From Neoconidiobolus thromboides FSU 785 (taxonomy: Eukaryota; Fungi; Entomophthoromycota), in the NCBI GenBank assembly GCA_025603075.1, contig MU626381.1, positions 1 through 62,102 of the forward strand: 62,102 bases of DNA. Reading direction: 5' to 3'. Shown here piece after piece: positions 96-51,424 of this stretch. A program made the position numbers and the translations under genes. Numbering within the stretch: the stretch's first letter is position 1; each line of letters begins with the position of its first letter. The notes beneath the pieces were generated by a model that did no database searches, was not told where the DNA came from, and saw only the letters and a list, made by a program, of their open reading frames with translations.

Positions 96-1271
96 TTTGT
101 GAAATATCGCTTTGTCAGTCCCATGGTTAACTATAGCATAATAATCCCTTAAACTGTTGTGTTCTCGAGTTCAGAGAAAATCAATCCCATGTTCTTATTT
201 TGATTTGCTATGAGAATTTCTATCTTCGTCTCAAAGGATATTCTCCTCCCGTTTTGATATTTATACTTTTCAGAGTATAAAAGAGTTTACAGAGTATAGT
301 AGTTCGAGGCTTTATAACTGAATCATTTCCTGATACCTCGAACATTTAATAAACCCACTAAGTTTTCTTAGTAGTATTTTATCCTATTACGTGGTATTCT
401 TCATAATTCAAGTCTATCTTAGTCACATAAAATAAGACTTTTCAATTTATAGTCTAGTCAATCAGATAATAGCTGTTTTTGACTCCAATCACCGAGTATC
501 AGATTTCACACAACAATAAAAAAATTAATAAAATTTTTAGAAAGTATAAAAAAAATGAGAAAATAATAATAATAAGATAATAATAAAATGACAAAAAAAG
601 TAAAAAAACAATAATAACAATAACAATAATAGAAAGTATTAAGAAATATTCATATTTATTAAACATAACTAAACTATACTATTACTAAATATCGGATAAA
701 TTGAAAAAAATCTAATATAATTTCAATTAGTTACAAGACCTATAAAAAATTAGCTTTAGCCTATTTTTTAGAAATAATTAAAAATTTAAAAGTTTTAACA
801 TTTACTAAGTAAATAAATAGTTTGTTAAATGATAAAAATAATTTCATTATAATGTAATTATAATATCAAAATTATTTATTTAATAACAAGTCTATAATAT
901 TAGCTATAGAGCAGTCAGTGATAAATACTTATCTATTTATATTTTATGTATTGCAACTTTAATTAATGCTAATACATAAGTTACCAATATTGTTTTTGCT
1001 AATATAACAATTTTTATCAAATTCAATAGAAATTCTGCTAACTTATAACATTATAATAAAGTTATTTAAAACTATGAAATATTCCTGGTTTTTAATATAA
1101 AAATTGTTCTAAATTCTAAGTAGTTTAAGTAATTAAAATTCTCAATTTTTTTAATCATTTTTTGCAAACTGAAAATTATTTTATTTTACTAATGGTTTTT
1201 AATATGTAAATCAAAGTTGAAAAATCGAATTAAAATGATCCCCCAATATCTGCTGAGTTTACTTGTTTTTG

Positions 1272-43147: not shown

Positions 43148-45690
43148 ATGGTAAATTAATTAAAATAAAGAATACAAATAAATAATAATATCATACTTAG
43201 GCGGGTGCTTTAGAAAACGCAAAAAAATATTTACCAAAGATTCAAGATGAAGAAAGAGAAAGTCGTTTCGGCTATATTTTTTCAGTTTCTGGTCCAGGTA
43301 AATTAAATTAATTATAAATTGTAAATTAATTTTAACTTTTATTTGATAGTTGTGGTCGCTGAAAAAATGTATGGCTCTGCTATGTATGAATTAGTATGTT
43401 TTATAACGACGTTATTTATCTATGAGTATATTTATTAATATTATCTTTTAAAATAGGTACGTGTAGGCTATGAAGAGTTAGTTGGTGAAGTTATTCGTAT
43501 TGATAGAGATAAAGCTACTATTCAAGTTTATGAAGAAACTTGTAAGGAATAATAAATTAGTTTCATAGAAGAGAAATATTAAAATTTGTTATTTTTAGCT
43601 GGTTTAACTATTGGTGATCCTGTATTAAAAACTGGTAAACCACTTTCGGTTGAACTTGGTCCAGGTAGATAGCAATTTAAGCTATAAACAATCATAATGA
43701 CTTACTAATTTTGTTTTATTTCAGGTTTAATGGAAAATATTTTTGATGGTATTCAGCGTCCATTAAAGGTAAGTTATATTTATATATTGATAGTGTAATA
43801 CTGATATAATTTTTTATTAGGCTATTCAAGATCAAAGTGAAAGTATTTATATTCCACGTGGTGTTGCTACTACTGCTTTAGATAAAACTATTTCTTGGGA
43901 TTTTTCTCCAACTGATTTTAAAGTAATTTGATATTGTAGCATTGTAATATATTTATTAATTTATTATAAATAATAGGTTGGTGATCATATTACCGGTGGT
44001 GATATTTTCGGCAGTATTTTTGAGAATTCTCTCTTGAAGAATCATTCAATTATTTTACCACCTAAAGCACTTGGTACTGTTACTTATATTGCTCCAAAAG
44101 GACAATATACTATTGATGTAAATATAAATCATAATTAATTTAATAACAATGACTAAATAATTACTCTTTAAACAGGATACTGTTTTAGAAGTTGAATTCA
44201 ATGGTGTAACTAATAAATATACTATGATGCATACTTGGCCAGTACGTTCCCCAAGGCCAGTAGCTGAAAAATTAGCAGCTAATCATCCACTTTTAACTGG
44301 GCAACGTGTACTTGATGCTCTTTTCCCGTAATTTGATTTGGATATTTTATTATGTATATTTTGTTTAAATAATTATTTAGTTGTGTACAAGGTGGCACTA
44401 CCGCTATCCCAGGCGCTTTTGGATGTGGTAAAACTGTAATTTCTCAATCCCTTTCAAAATATTCCAACTCTGATATCATTATTTATGTTGGTTGTGGTGA
44501 ACGTGGTAATGAGATGGCTGAAGTATTAATGGATTTCCCAGAAGTAAGAATATCACTTAGTTTAATAATACCATAGTTTATTAATTGATTTTAACTTAAT
44601 AATTAGTTATCTGTTGCCATTGATGGTCAACAAGAATCTATCATGAAGCGTACTACTTTAGTAGCTAATACATCTAATATGCCTGTAGCTGCCCGTGAAG
44701 CTTCTATTTATACTGGTATTACTCTTTCTGAATATTTCCGTGATATGGGACGTAATGTTGCTATGATGGCTGATTCCACTTCTCGTTGGGCTGAAGCTTT
44801 ACGTGAAATTTCGGGTCGTTTAGCTGAAATGCCTGCTGATTCTGGTTATCCAGCCTACCTTGGTGCCCGTCTTGCTTCTTTCTATGAGCGTGCTGGTAAA
44901 GTCACTTGTTTAGGTAATCCAAGACGTGAAGGTAGTGTTAGTGTAGTTGGTGCTGTATCGCCACCAGGTGGTGATTTCTCTGATCCAGTTACTTCAGCTA
45001 CTTTAGGTATTGTACAAGTGTTTTGGGGCTTAGATAAAAAATTAGCTCAACGTAAACATTTCCCTTCTGTTAATTGGTCCCAATCTTATTCTAAGTACAT
45101 GAAGGCACTTGAACCTTATTATGAAAAAGCAGATTCTGAATTCATTGGATTACGTACTAAATGTAAAGAAATTCTTCAAATGGAAGAAGATCTTTCTGAA
45201 ATTGTACAATTGGTAGGAAAGGTAAATTCGGTTTGTAATAAAAACAATGAATGTTTATTAATATTATTTTAATAGAGTGCTTTAGCTGAAAGTGATAAGA
45301 TTACTTTAGAAGTAGCACGTATTATTAAAGATGATTTCTTACAACAAAATGGGTATTCATCATATGATAAATATTGCCCATTTTATAAAACAGTCTGGTT
45401 ATTACGTAATATGATTAGCTTTTATAGAGAGGCTACTCACGCAGTTGAAGTAACTAATAACCAAATTACATGGGCTAAAATTCGTGATTCTATGGGTGAT
45501 TTACTTTATAAATTATCATCTATGAAATTTGAGGTAAAATCTATTGTTACAAAATTTATAAATATGCGATAATATTTAATATTTTATTTTATTAATTTAG
45601 GATCCTGCTGATGGTGAAGAAGTATTAGTTTCTCGTTATCAAAACCTTCAAAAAGAAATTGAAGAACGATTCCGTCAACTTGTAGATTAA
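43148..45690 (+). CDS. VMA1: V-ATPase catalytic subunit A, 13 exons, no intein
   Basis: ATG-only exon 1; [39 protein letters not shown]; 12 GT-AG introns. Confidence 0.98.
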
Positions 45691-45959
45691 ACAGTATGAA
45701 CTATTAATATTCTAAGTTGATTAATAGAATCCCATCGACCTGCCTTTAATCAATTTCTGTTTTTTTCTATTATTTCATAAATGATAATTTGAATCTATTA
45801 TTAAATACTTTAGATTATATATTATTACTATTTTGAAGGTATAAACTACTTTATTTTACTATTTTCATAAATTTATCATGAAATTAAATATGAGATATGA
45901 AAATACCTTTATTCTAATAAAACACAATGTTACTGCTGCAACACCTTATAAAAATCAAA

Positions 45960-47000
45960 CTATAAAGTATAGAGAGTACATGATGGTTTGAATCTGATTT
46001 AGTTTAACTAATATTAGATTAATGCAACTAGAGAAATTACATAACTATTATCCTAGCCTTCTAAATCGAGATTATATAAGCACATTTTTACTTAAACTTT
46101 GAATATCCAGTATTCATTGTGTTGTTCATGCGAGAATGCGAGTTGCAGGGGTTAGGAAGAGGTGAGGGTACTAACCAGACAAGCATTAGCTTTTTTACTT
46201 CAAAAAAACTCCTATTTCAGATAAGGCTTTGTTTCAGCTAAAAAAGGAATTATTTAGAAATAAAAAGTAGCTGTTATATGCTTTTAATAAGGTTAAGTTA
46301 GAGAAGCTAGGGTTAATGTTTAAATTTAACTAGATTTAATCAGCTATTTGTTTGATAAAAATCAATACTTTACCAAAAACGCTACCAACTCAGCCAGTAC
46401 ACTCCTACCACTGAAATTTAATTTGATTTTTAAGCTCGAAGTTAAAATGCTTTGGCTAAAAACCAAACAACTTGATGTGATTGCTTTTATTAGATTTTTA
46501 ACACACAGCTAAACCAAGCTGTTATTGATTTCGTAAAAGAACTAAAGAAATTGTAGAGTCAAATAAATTTAGATTATTTAGTATTCAAAACTTTAGAATA
46601 AACAATATCTAGCAACTTGAATAACCCAAAGGCAATGAAATCATTAAGAATCTCATATAAGAAATTCAAGTCCTGATATCAGTTTAATTACACTATATTA
46701 ATATAATAAAGCCACGAAACTATATCTTAGATCCTTTCCAAGCCTACCTGATTAGATTGAACTCCCTTACTCGGCTAATAAACAACAACTTGCTTCCCCT
46801 ACTTCTACTGAATTGCTTATGTAGTAGAGAGTTTGCCAGAGCGAGGATGTTAAAAATTAGAAATTAAGTTGATACTAAAAGCAAATCAACAATGTGTTCA
46901 TCTTATGCCCTGATCACCCTACAGGGTCAAACCCATCTAACAAAAACTTACCTTTGCTGACAGATCTGGGGTCAAGCAGGATGTAGCACTTCGTCAGAAT
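45960..47000 (-). ncRNA. Candidate telomerase RNA (ends approximate)
   Basis: No long ORF, raised GC; template UAACCCUA 46315-46308, core-enclosing helix, H-type pseudoknot with U-rich loop and bulged U, three-way junction; G-U pairs specific to the minus strand. Confidence 0.7.
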
Positions 47001-47845
47001 TGTTAAAAGGCTAAATAGTAAAGATGATTTCATTAAAAAAATTAGATCTTCTCAATAAAAAATATTTTATACTTAGATTTTACAAAATATACCCTAAATG
47101 GATTAAATAGCTATATGGGATTTGATTATATTTTTAGTCAAATTTGAGAATTGAGCATTTAGCTAAATAAGCAATCAAAAATGATTCTGGTTGTTTATTA
47201 AATTTTTAAAGCATAATTATAAACTTTTATTATAATTTTCAACAATTATTAATGGTGTTTTATTTCATTTAAAATAAACAAAAATCAATAGTATAAAATA
47301 TAGTAAGAATCGTGATATTATTCCTTTTCTTTTGATATCATTAAATATTCCGCTTATGTCTTTTTTGTATTAAAATTTATCGTATTGAGTTATACATTGA
47401 TTTCATGCGATTTGTTTTTTGTCTAGACAGTGATTTTAACTTTAAGTCAAGCTGACGAATTACTGTGATATACAACTTCAAGGTATACAAAATATTTTAA
47501 AGTAAGAAATAAAATCTCTAATTATTTTTATCCCTTTGAGTACTCATAAAAATCAACTATGGTCTACAAAAAGTTTTAAACACAGTTAGCTTAGTAGTAA
47601 AGAAATAACTAAATTAAAAAAACTTATTTTAATTTAGATGATAGCAGTCGTAAATTTTTAAAAATATATATTGTAATATAAATCATAATATCAAACAAGT
47701 AAATTTCCTAGTCTTATTTCATCTAAATGAAGCTTTTTTAGTTGATATTTTTGTTGACATTTTATTGAACCTTATACAAAAGTGTGGTATCTCCATTTTA
47801 CAAATTTGTTAAGCTAAAATTTTCACTAGGCTTGGATTAATGCTA

Positions 47846-47946
47846 TGAGAGGATGTATTTTTTGTTTAGGAATTTTATTAGCAATTGTTCTACTCAGATG
47901 GTGCTTAAAAATGGAAAAGGTGATGAAATAAAAAACACCTCCATAT
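47846..47946 (-). mobile_element. Diverged MITE-like copy (left arm of pair 3)
   Basis: Reverse match to consensus ending CACCTCCATAT. Confidence 0.75.
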
Positions 47947-48474
47947 ACAGGTTGTTTAATGTTTTAATGGTCAATATAAAGGTGTATAATCTAGTGAAAA
48001 ATACGATTAAACTAATAAAATTGATAAAAAATAATAGAAAAATATTTGAATTTTATTCTTTTTTATTTTATTTTATTCAAACTATAATAAAATGATAAAG
48101 CTATTATTTTTAAAGCAATTGTATACAATAGTCATTTTCTAAAATTTTGATCAAATTTTAATAAATTTTTCTAATTTACAATTAAAAAACATTAGTACAT
48201 ATTTCGAAGCCTTCTGTATCATCTAATATTGCTATATTAAAGGTTTATTTAATTTTTTTAATATGAATTGCTACTTTTATAAAACCGTGTACTCTAAATT
48301 AATTAAATCAACCAAAGATTTTTGAAAGCATATTAAAGAGGAATTTTTATAGATAGTATTCAAACTTAAATTTCAGTATAAATAATTTGTATTTCTGTTA
48401 AATCTCTGCTGATTTTGGTTTTGTTTTTTCTGCTAAAAACTTTTCCTGTATCTGTATTATATTTAAAAAAAATG

Positions 48475-48574
48475 AGATGAGGATGTTTTTTTTGGTCTCA
48501 TTACTTCTATTTTTTAAGGCCTATTTGAGCAGAAAAATTGTTAGTAAAATTCTTAAACAAATATATCCTCATAT
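48475..48574 (+). mobile_element. Diverged MITE-like copy (right arm of pair 3)
   Basis: Forward match ending ATCCTCATAT. Confidence 0.75.
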
Positions 48575-48973
48575 TATATATATTCAAGCATCAAATTATA
48601 TTATAGAAGCCTTTTAGTTTGCGTCTTTTAGGCTAAAAAATTTAAATTTTAAATGACTCATTTTAAGCCACTTTGTTTTAGTATTAATAACTCTAGTATT
48701 TTTGATATTATCGATACGGCTTAAGATCAGTAAAAATCAGATATTTTAAACCATGTTTATTAATATCCATTATCTTACTCCTCCTTCTTTCAAAATTATA
48801 GTACATTAAAAATACCCATAATAATTCTAAACATCCTGTATTAAAATAAAAGCAAGCTTATTCCTTTCTATTTTTATTTTTAAGTATTTTTATATAACTA
48901 ATAGTTCAGCTCAATTTTTTTTTTGAAAAATACACTCAATTGTAACTTTAAGTATCTGTTATTTAATTTTAAT

Positions 48974-51424
48974 ATGTCACTTCCGATAAGCAAATGGCCG
49001 GTACGTCATAAACTAATTTTGATCGAAGCAGCCAAAAAATACCAGTTTGAAGCATGGGAGCATGTACAATATTATTTAATGAATCATCCATGGACCAAGT
49101 TAGAAATCGATGTTAATGTAACTTTAAAAAATCACAAATTTTAATTTAAACTAAACCAAATTTTAGGATACAGAGCTAGCTCTCATTCAATTATTAGATA
49201 GCTTTTCAACTGATATTTCCGTGTTGAAGTAATTAAGTTTGAGTTTAAAAGTGAGAACACTAACAGTTTTTATTAGAAATGAAAATGATAATAAGATGTT
49301 TGATGAAATTTATCAAGCAATAAGGACAGAATATAAGAATGTCTTAAAGGAACAGCAAACAGAAGTCAACGAAATTTTCAAGGCTCTCAAACGTAAAGCA
49401 GATGATACGATTGCTAGTCCATTAAAAAATAGAAAGAAAAATGGTAATGATTTTTATAATCAGATTATCAATTGAAGTTCATTTTTTTTAGATAGTGACA
49501 GTGGTAATGAATCTGAAATCGAGGATAAAACTGAGAATAGTAAAATTAATTTTGAGCTGCTCAGGGACCCAGAGTATTTTAAAATGGTTAACCAAAACCT
49601 TAAAGTTTTATTTAAAAATGTTTTGGATAAGGAAAGTAAACAATCGAATGAATTAGAAAACGGTATTTAACAGTTTTTATTTTATTTCAATTAGTAATTT
49701 TTTTAGAAAAAATAATTGAAGATTATAATACCGTTGTTGAAATCAATGACGATACAGTTGGAACACCTACCACTTTAGAAGATCAAAATCAAAGTTTAAA
49801 CTTAACAGATAAGCCTACACTTGAGAAAACTAACTCTTCAAATAAAAAATCAGAATCTGTAATCTTAATCACAAATTCGGAAAAAGCAAGCGACCTAAGT
49901 GCTGAATCAACAAAGTTAACAAAAGGTCAAGCTATTGGAACATATGATATGGAATTAAAAGGAAAAGACTCGATGAAAGCATTAACTATTAAAGATATTG
50001 GGTTAGAAAACCAAACAGATGAAGGTAATTGTAACAAATTTAGTATTAAAACTAAATAATAATTTAAAAATTTTCAAGATAGCAATTATGAAAATATTAA
50101 TAATGAAGAAAGTGAACTTAATTCACAAAAGAATAATTCTGAGGAAATCATACCTTTAGGAGAAACCTTGCCAGAAGCAGCAATTGAAACAACAAATACA
50201 ACTGTGTCAGATGAAAATAAAGAAACTACTCACGAATTAGAAAGTAAAATTGAAACAATAGTCGATAAACAGAAGCCCTTATTAGATATACAAGAGCAAC
50301 CAAAGAGGGATATGGTATCTAACACTTCTGATATAGTTCAAGAATCGAATGATATGACCAATGAAGGTGAAAAAACAGGTAAAATAATAGAATGTCTAAT
50401 AGTGCATCTAACTTATTTTATAGTAAATGCTAGTGTTTCAATCAATGATAAAGAATTGTTTATCAAAGATAAGAAATTTAATGGAGAGAATGAAATAAAC
50501 GTTGAAAATAGCAATATTAAAGAAGCTCCTCAATCAATATCAATCGGATATTCGAATATACTCAATGATCCAGAAGTCATGAGCAAGGATGAAAAGAATA
50601 AATCACATGAAATTAAGGAGTATAATAATGAGAAAAATGATGCTCAAAAACATATCGAGGAAGAGGAAATAAATAACGGAGACATTGATGATAATGAACA
50701 AAAAGCTGTGATTGAAGTTGAAAATATTGAATACAGTGATTCTCAAGGTTTAGCAAAGGTGGAAGAAGAGATGGATGAAATAATAAAGAAGTTGAAAATG
50801 GAAGGAGAAAATGAAAAGGGTATCGAAATTAAACAAGAGAAGAAAGAAGAAAGAATAGGAACACCCACCATAAAAGGAATATTGAGCAAAAATAAAGAAA
50901 TTAAAGAAGAAAAGAAGCAAGTTAGCTTTATCAATATACCAACTGAAGCTAATACTACCTTCACATCTACAGTGAATACTCCCTCTACTATTGCAGATCA
51001 CACACCTTCTGAATTTTACGTTAAAGACAACCCAAAGAAGTGGAAAAAATTGGCTCTTATGGTCTTAAGAGAAATTTCAAATCATCGGTTAGCACCTTTG
51101 TTTCAGAAGCCTATTAAAGAAACAGTAGCACCAGGTTACTATGATATTGTATTAGAGCCTATTGATTTAAATAAAATAGCCAGAAAAATTAAAGAAGGGG
51201 TAAGTAATTTAATTATCATTTATCATATATTTACATTAATTAATCATAAATAGACAATTACAAATACTGAAGAATTTACACGAGATATTTTATTAATGTG
51301 TCAAAATGCTCTAATGTTTAATCGACAAGACACTGAGATTTATGCAATGGCTTTAGAAATGTTACAAGCTGTACAATCCAACCTTGAAACTTTAATGGAA
51401 ACGGATCTTTATCGATTAAATTAA
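48974..51424 (+). CDS. BRD8-like bromodomain protein (NuA4/TIP60-type), about 7-8 exons
   Basis: N-terminal W..RHKLIL..W SANT-like block; C-terminal bromodomain WKKLALMVLREISNHR..FQKP..APGYY..PIDL..F.RDILLMCQNALMFN; a 45-nt stop-free intron at 50379-50423 is probable. Confidence 0.8.

Follow-up and report, generated by a model that had tools for sequence, protein, structure and literature searches.

The telomerase RNA candidate described here was found in a window of 62,102 nucleotides (nt) from the fungus Neoconidiobolus thromboides FSU 785 (contig MU626381.1 of assembly GCA_025603075.1, positions 1 to 62,102 of the forward strand), and all window positions below refer to this whole stretch. 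The genome has about 27% G+C. The window starts with a (CCCTAA)n telomere at positions 1-93, the repeat being TTAGGG. Further in, the plus strand encodes VMA1, whose stop codon is at 45688-45690, and downstream of it lies a 3.2-kb gap before the next plus-strand gene, which starts near 48900. This gap holds no open reading frame (ORF) of at least 60 codons on either strand and none of at least 40 codons on the minus strand. The original prediction placed the core of a telomerase RNA, made up of a template and a pseudoknot, on the minus strand of the gap, with a template for this chromosome's own repeat. The minus strand was read from 45900 to 46700 and each element was re-extracted by coordinate. 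All the listed sequence elements are at the positions given for them, and the telomere repeat in question is the one that opens the window.

Logan contigs from four RNA runs (X1-X4), which belong to two studies, were compared with 44800-49200. In each of the four, the introns of VMA1 are spliced out, which identifies them as RNA libraries. Apart from VMA1, separate contigs cover 45907-47008 in X2, 45935-47034 in X3 and 45892-47010 in X4, and contigs from all four runs and both studies contain non-coding RNA from the strand that carries the candidate template. The depth of the transcript contigs is 10-17 compared to 444-877 for VMA1 (about 2-3%), while the remainder of the 3.2-kb gap is mostly silent in these runs. 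The transcript was assigned to the minus strand since its GU..AG introns read CT..AC on the plus strand. The contigs have their 5' ends at 47034, 47010 and 47008, and a TATAAAA box lies 31-37 nt upstream of them, at 47065-47071 (minus strand). The locus produces a TATA-driven, spliced, minus-strand non-coding RNA that runs from about 47034 to 45907. This separate transcript, seen in RNA-run contigs of two studies, is new in this analysis. The lack of a minus-strand transcript would have refuted the original prediction, which passes this test: the transcript found covers the proposed 5' arm, the core and the distal domain. Exon 1 spans 45907-47034 (minus strand; contigs X2, X3 and X4) and has 1128 nt up to the 5' splice site. 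RNA coordinates are given as r = 47034 - w + 1, where w is the window position. The motif UUAGGGU is present at 47091-47097 (minus strand), about 25 nt upstream of the TATAAAA box, and is possibly a site for a telomere-repeat-binding factor, or there by chance.

The longest ATG ORF in exon 1 has 39 codons, whether the RNA is spliced or unspliced, and a protein-coding gene was rejected on these grounds. A repeat or mobile element was also rejected, as 45700-47100 is unique by BLAST against the window. No tRNA was found at the locus. It is very improbable that the RNA is a host or precursor transcript for some other product, such as a small nucleolar RNA (snoRNA) encoded in the intron or a micropeptide encoded by the 5'-terminal ORF of 39 codons. 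The ORF begins at nt 2 of the longest contig, and a weak SNORD121A-like match occurs at 46297-46377 (E = 6). However, of the three contigs reaching that end, two (47008 and 47010) start downstream of the AUG, and the snoRNA match is exonic and far below threshold (17.7 vs 44 bits). No C/D or H/ACA boxes were seen on reading the intron.

The intron (45808-45906, minus strand) has the 5' splice site AAG/GUAUUU (45907/45906) and two acceptors, at 45859/45858 (48 nt) and 45808/45807 (99 nt). An X1 contig joins 45907 to 45807, and the 99 nt that it skips read CT..AC on the plus strand. An X2 contig carries ten extra letters before 45907, CTTTATTTTA, which equal 45849-45858 and give an AG acceptor at 45860-45859 and a 48-nt intron. 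From the X1 joint and the loose end of X2, it follows that the same minus-strand 5' splice site was used in two studies. The start of exon 2 (45760-45807, minus strand, with the lower bound of 45760 inferred) is antisense to the 3' untranslated region (UTR) of VMA1. The X1 contig fuses exon 2 with the 3' end of VMA1, so the two overlap by at least one assembly word. Just upstream of the splice site, exon 1 ends in a U-rich 3' tail at 45914-45956 (minus strand; RNA 1079-1121), which includes GAUUUUUAUAAGG at 45956-45944 and GUGUUUUAUUAG at 45925-45914. The 5' splice site is 12 nt past a U4 run. The U-rich tracts are possible non-canonical Sm/LSm sites, judging by their letters.

Two further observations concern splicing and the 3' end. 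The non-coding RNA runs toward VMA1, and the two share 45690-45807 in their 3' parts; one X1 contig merges both there and carries introns of both strands. A consensus-looking 5' splice site, G/GUAAGU, is present at 46946-46952 (minus strand), with a possible acceptor near 46884. The X2, X3 and X4 contigs are unspliced through it, and the X1 contig stops exactly at 46946. GUAAGU at 46951-46946 was rejected as an intron start, as it is spliced in no contig.

The transcript raises the real possibility of an ordinary spliced long non-coding RNA (lncRNA). Such an RNA would be convergent with VMA1 and antisense to its 3' UTR, it would either regulate VMA1 or have no function, and the repeat 8-mers and helices described below would be chance products of AT-rich DNA. 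The overlap of exon 2 with the VMA1 3' UTR and the complete splicing in two studies both fit an ordinary lncRNA. Against it, transcription here is not pervasive, with the rest of the gap nearly silent.

The first template candidate, T1, is UAACCCUA at 46308-46315 (minus strand; RNA 720-727). It would provide six templating and two alignment nt and be copied as TAGGGTTA. T1 has the minimum template length of 8 nt and is complementary to more than one repeat of the window's own telomere. Since the window begins with a (CCCTAA)n telomere, UAACCCUA would be the correct template here. T1 is unpaired in the full-length minimum-energy fold; its mean unpaired probability is 0.49, which places it only in the top quarter of 8-nt windows. 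A single 8-mer of this kind is not beyond chance, as about 2.6 copies are present in shuffles of the window. A composition estimate puts the expected number of such 8-mers, counting the repeat in every register, at about 0.04-0.05 for each 1.1 kb of a single strand. With about 0.05 expected per 1.1 kb, one template-like motif in a non-coding RNA is unusual, yet not rare genome-wide, and over all non-coding RNAs of the genome this expectation favors an ordinary lncRNA.

A second template candidate, T2, is CCUAACCC at 46149-46156 (minus strand; RNA 879-886), 160 nt downstream of T1 and 7 nt after the closing helix described below. Outside the telomere, the window contains four C-strand 8-mers in any register, two of which are in this transcript. 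For a single 1.1-kb RNA to have two C-strand 8-mers on its sense strand, the probability is about 1e-3, which argues against a chance origin in an ordinary lncRNA. The pair strengthens a general link to telomeres and does not by itself strengthen the identification as a telomerase RNA.

The predicted closing helix pairs GAGUGUACUGGCU (46392-46404, minus strand; RNA 631-643) with GGUUAGUACCCUC (46164-46176, minus strand; RNA 859-871) at 12 of 13 positions, three of the pairs being G-U. It appears in the centroid structure of the 249-nt core and also in the full 1128-nt minimum-energy fold, with a pair probability of about 0.38 in the full-length RNA. In 400 dinucleotide shuffles of a 420-nt piece, an enclosing helix of at least 12 bp was found in 15% and an unpaired 8-mer at that place in 9%. 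Both occurred together in 2/400 (0.5%), a further point against an ordinary lncRNA. The z-score for fold stability is -2.55 for the 249-nt core, -1.8 for the 3' part and -1.2 for the 5' arm. The 3' strand of the helix begins with GGUUAG (46171-46176), a sequence similar to the telomere G-strand and able to pair with T1 or T2. T2 pairs with it in about 39% of the ensemble.

Between the closing helix and T1 there are two hairpins, both candidates for the template boundary. The hairpin at 46341-46384 (minus strand; RNA 651-694) is the stronger one and ends 25 nt upstream of T1. It has a 10-bp inner stem with two G-U pairs, and this inner stem is predicted in both the minimum-energy and the centroid folds. 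The other, at 46320-46339 (minus strand; RNA 696-715), is a 6-bp all-A-U hairpin that ends 4 nt before T1. It is a weak boundary candidate, for which no significance is claimed, and it is missing from the minimum-energy fold, where 689-694 pairs with 703-708.

Downstream of T1, an H-type pseudoknot can be drawn over RNA 762-827 (minus strand throughout). The 5' strand of P2, CAGCUA (46268-46273), is followed by CUUUUU at 46267-46262. The 5' strand of P3, AUUCCUUUU (46250-46242), and the 3' strand of P2, UAGCUG (46240-46235), together occupy 46235-46250. The 3' strand of P3, AAA-U-AGGAGU with its bulged U, is at 46208-46217. The pairing of P3 is predicted within a long hairpin of the minimum-energy fold, and P3 is thermodynamically plausible. 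The window was scanned for a first stem (S1) of at least 6 bp with a U-run directly after it and a second stem (S2) of at least 9 bp with a UUU/AAA end, allowing at most one bulge. This pattern occurs at 31 loci in 124 kb (about 1 per 4 kb) in this AT-rich window, which gives a chance of about 4% that one falls within 150 nt of a given point. Look-alikes at this density are also what the lncRNA explanation draws on.

T1 is favored over T2 because only T1 has a candidate pseudoknot downstream. It is unlikely that the RNA is a telomerase RNA in which T2, CCUAACCC, is the working template. Helix 631-643/859-871 would then be a template boundary of the yeast type instead of closing the core, and the P2/P3 pseudoknot would be irrelevant. 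T2 does come shortly after the long-range helix that has the highest G+C content of the region, and close to T1 the only boundary candidate is the 6-bp all-A-U hairpin. On the other hand, the pattern scan found no pseudoknot downstream of T2, and only about 240 nt would be left for a pseudoknot, a distal element and a 3' tail. The partial pairing of T2 with GGUUAG also argues against it, as does the position of T1, which fits the canonical order of template then pseudoknot.

Further along the RNA, the hairpin UGAAUA-CUGGA-UAUUCA is found at 46100-46116 (minus strand; RNA 919-935). In its inner 4 bp and its 5-nt NUNGN loop, it agrees with the consensus for P6.1 (PMC3592445), and the part AAUA-CUGGA-UAUU (46114-46102) has a pair probability of 0.84 in the full-length ensemble. 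From its 5' end, the RNA as drawn consists of a 5' arm (1-630), a closing strand, the hairpins, the template, the pseudoknot, the second closing strand, the CUGGA hairpin, the U-rich tracts and the 5' splice site after 1128. This canonical order, which holds from the boundary hairpins through the 5' splice site, is harder to reconcile with an ordinary lncRNA.

The region could be the core, with template and pseudoknot, of the telomerase RNA of this fungus, and we regard this as an evenly balanced proposition, counting in it the small share given to T2 as the template. This estimate was reached because chance look-alikes among the non-coding RNAs of the genome have to be weighed against a single true gene. 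Several points weigh against the telomerase RNA. The presence of T2 in the same RNA makes the choice between the candidate templates ambiguous. P2 has a pair probability of 0 in the ensemble, and RNA 752-857 prefers one long hairpin that contains P3 and competes with the pseudoknot. No three-way junction is predicted around the CUGGA hairpin, the stem of this hairpin can be extended to 6 bp, and hairpins with 4 bp and a NUNGN loop occur about once per 700 nt here. They are thus common by chance, as would be expected if the RNA were an ordinary lncRNA. The structural argument as a whole (triple-helix pseudoknot, boundary and CR4/5) is drawn from one sequence in a genome of 27% G+C, which yields many pairings of this sort. 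The Sm consensus AU5-6GR is not matched by either U-rich tract. The contigs give no strand, abundance or 3' ends, and cleavage at the splice site stays a proposal for this reason. Template-like loci are also numerous in any genome, 782 having been counted in that of Ustilago maydis (PMC9564094), and the window alone was searched here.

The strain of X2-X4 supplies another set of points on the same side. It has six single-nucleotide polymorphisms (SNPs) relative to the reference in the transcript. Three of them break G-C pairs of the predicted fold, one changes G-U to A-U and two are unpaired. The SNP at 46238 (G797A) turns the central P2 pair C765-G797 into C-A and is uncompensated. With all six inserted, the minimum-energy fold no longer contains the closing helix and has its template paired, so the thermodynamic support is fragile. 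SNPs that ignore the predicted pairs, and a fold that is unstable to them, are also in line with an ordinary lncRNA. The strain differences were considered as structural support and rejected, since the six give none. In other DNA runs (X11-X14), the locus is nearly unchanged. The structure originally proposed stands in part: the closing helix is predicted and P3 is plausible, while P2 is unpredicted and is broken by the strain SNP. As for the identity of the RNA, the transcript and the template match speak for a telomerase RNA, whereas the structure has moderate support and its P2 is contradicted by the SNP.

The Rfam search gave no match at gathering thresholds in the whole window and no telomerase family (vertebrate, ciliate, Saccharomyces or ascomycete) up to E = 10 in 45600-47200. 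This result is also compatible with an ordinary lncRNA. Besides the weak SNORD121A-like match, the only Rfam matches with E <= 10 in 45600-47200 are sub-threshold and miRNA-like, which is explained by the long hairpin at RNA 752-857. Since telomerase RNA evolves so fast, the absence of an Rfam match says little.

Relatives of the locus were sought through its neighbor genes. Protein searches with UBP3 and RPB9 gave no matches, and no exact RPB9 record was found. The VMA1 exon search returned proteins from many eukaryotes at 93% identity or less, with the early-diverging fungi Coelomomyces, Nowakowskiella and Coemansia as the best named matches. In the contigs around seven VMA1 matches (L001-L010 and L091-L097), there are other neighbor genes or there is little sequence downstream of VMA1. 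L001-L010 have 34-43% G+C, and BLAST of the transcript region against them found nothing similar. With the last large VMA1 exon, 80 metagenome loci were found at 80% identity or less. One of them, L012 (JGI Ga0138321_10004440; 27.8% G+C), has the best exon match (80%) and is possibly a relative; it ends 318 nt past the exon. The VMA1-anchored contigs (L001-L097), which are not syntenic or belong to distant organisms, contained no orthologue and no template-like 8-mer adjoining VMA1. Because no orthologue was found, there is no support from covariation or template conservation. This, too, counts against a telomerase RNA.

Two other signals were seen in the gap. Contigs at a depth of 3-6 cover 47224-47972 in X1 and X3 only, in an otherwise silent portion. 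At 48521-48560, each of the four RNA runs has pieces of 33-40 nt with a depth of 365-927, which extend into sequence that differs from the window. They represent a short word that also occurs in a strongly expressed transcript from another place.

Fungal telomerase RNAs are RNA polymerase II (Pol II) transcripts of 1.2-2 kb with core-enclosing helices. The upstream loop of their pseudoknot can hold an extra helix, and P6.1 has 4 bp and a 5-nt NUNGN loop (PMC3592445). The 5' splice site overlaps the Sm site in Schizosaccharomyces pombe and lies 14 and 27 nt downstream of the mature end in S. cryophilus and S. octosporus, respectively (PMC4299874). In Aspergillus, it stands beside a pyrimidine-rich tract (PMC3603654). 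By comparison of layouts, the predicted element order of the candidate matches those published for fungi, together with its 1.1-kb RNA of Pol II type and the intron past a U-rich tail.

The TER1 RNAs of Schizosaccharomyces (S. pombe, S. cryophilus and S. octosporus) resemble the candidate in several respects. They are Pol II non-coding RNAs of about 1.2 kb, their intron follows immediately past a U-rich 3' tail and spliced forms are detectable as by-products. Their 5' splice site is 1-27 nt past the mature end (PMC4299874), and that of the candidate is 12 nt after the U4 run. Unlike them, the candidate is without a canonical AU5-6GR Sm site, and its cleavage without exon ligation is a proposal. 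Its template is also of the regular TTAGGG type, in contrast to the irregular repeat of S. pombe, and no sequence similarity between TER1 and the candidate was found.

The RNAs of the Pezizomycotina (Neurospora crassa and Aspergillus) share with the candidate, as drawn, a TTAGGG-type template and core-enclosing helices. Their pseudoknot carries an additional element in its upstream loop and combines contiguous helices with a U-run that serves base triples, and their P6.1 has 4 bp and a NUNGN loop (PMC3592445). Their 3' ends are processed by the spliceosome (PMC3603654, PMC4299874), and the candidate is likened to them in this by its layout. They differ in being longer, at 1.5-2 kb or more. In the candidate, the 5' splice site is GUAUUU and full splicing occurs. 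The three-way junction of the Pezizomycotina is backed by covariation, while none is predicted in the candidate. In the Basidiomycota, the Ustilago maydis TER is of similar size, at about 1.3 kb, with the template UAACCCUAA, a template/pseudoknot domain and a CR4/5 with P6.1 (PMC9564094). Its source is the 3' UTR of an mRNA that encodes a protein, from which it is processed, whereas the candidate has its own TATA promoter and no coding part.

The Rfam model Telomerase-vert has no match at the locus. The vertebrate core resembles the one drawn for the candidate. Its P3 ends in UUU/AAA and has one bulged U, its P2 is followed by a U-rich loop and its downstream loop is A-rich. In mouse, the template has 8 nt with a 2-nt alignment region, as proposed for T1. 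Vertebrate telomerase RNAs differ from the candidate in having an H/ACA 3' domain and a length of 310-560 nt.

If the RNA is a telomerase RNA with T1 as its template, the telomerase reverse transcriptase (TERT) would align over 2 nt of UAACCCUA (RNA 720-727) and synthesize GGGTTA repeats on it. The template and the downstream H-type pseudoknot, with its P2, U-rich loop and P3 with a bulged U, would lie inside the long-range helix 631-643/859-871, and the distal CUGGA-loop hairpin (919-935) would take the role of P6.1. The first splicing step at AAG/GUAUUU would release exon 1, as in fission yeast and Aspergillus. Exon 1 would then be trimmed back into the U-rich tail. In that case, the mature telomerase RNA would be exon 1, and the spliced, polyadenylated forms in the RNA runs would be by-products. 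That all of this holds together, with an authentic telomerase RNA of an early-diverging (zygomycete-grade) fungus that has both a vertebrate-like triple-helix pseudoknot and a 3' end released by the spliceosome, is a tentative suggestion.

Because telomerase RNAs change so rapidly, they have had to be discovered anew in each major lineage, and the experimentally known fungal ones come from the Ascomycota and Basidiomycota only. In the literature searched, no telomerase RNA is reported for the Zoopagomycota, Mucoromycota, chytrids or Entomophthorales, aside from a tentative and unconfirmed ciliate-like candidate in Lichtheimia (PMC4133162). The earlier statement that none had been described for the Zoopagomycota holds within this literature. 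With the limits of the transcript, its splice site and two template candidates now defined, the locus is directly testable. If the identification is true, this would be the first telomerase RNA from an early-diverging fungus, in a lineage where none is known, and the 3' intron would be its most interesting part. Once validated, it would root the fungal telomerase RNA tree and put to the test an ancestral origin, in fungi and animals, of P6.1 and the vertebrate-like pseudoknot. It would also tell if cutting of the 3' end by the spliceosome is older than the Dikarya. Should the tentative suggestion above be right in full, the core common to animals and fungi, and the formation of the 3' end by the spliceosome, would both predate the Dikarya.

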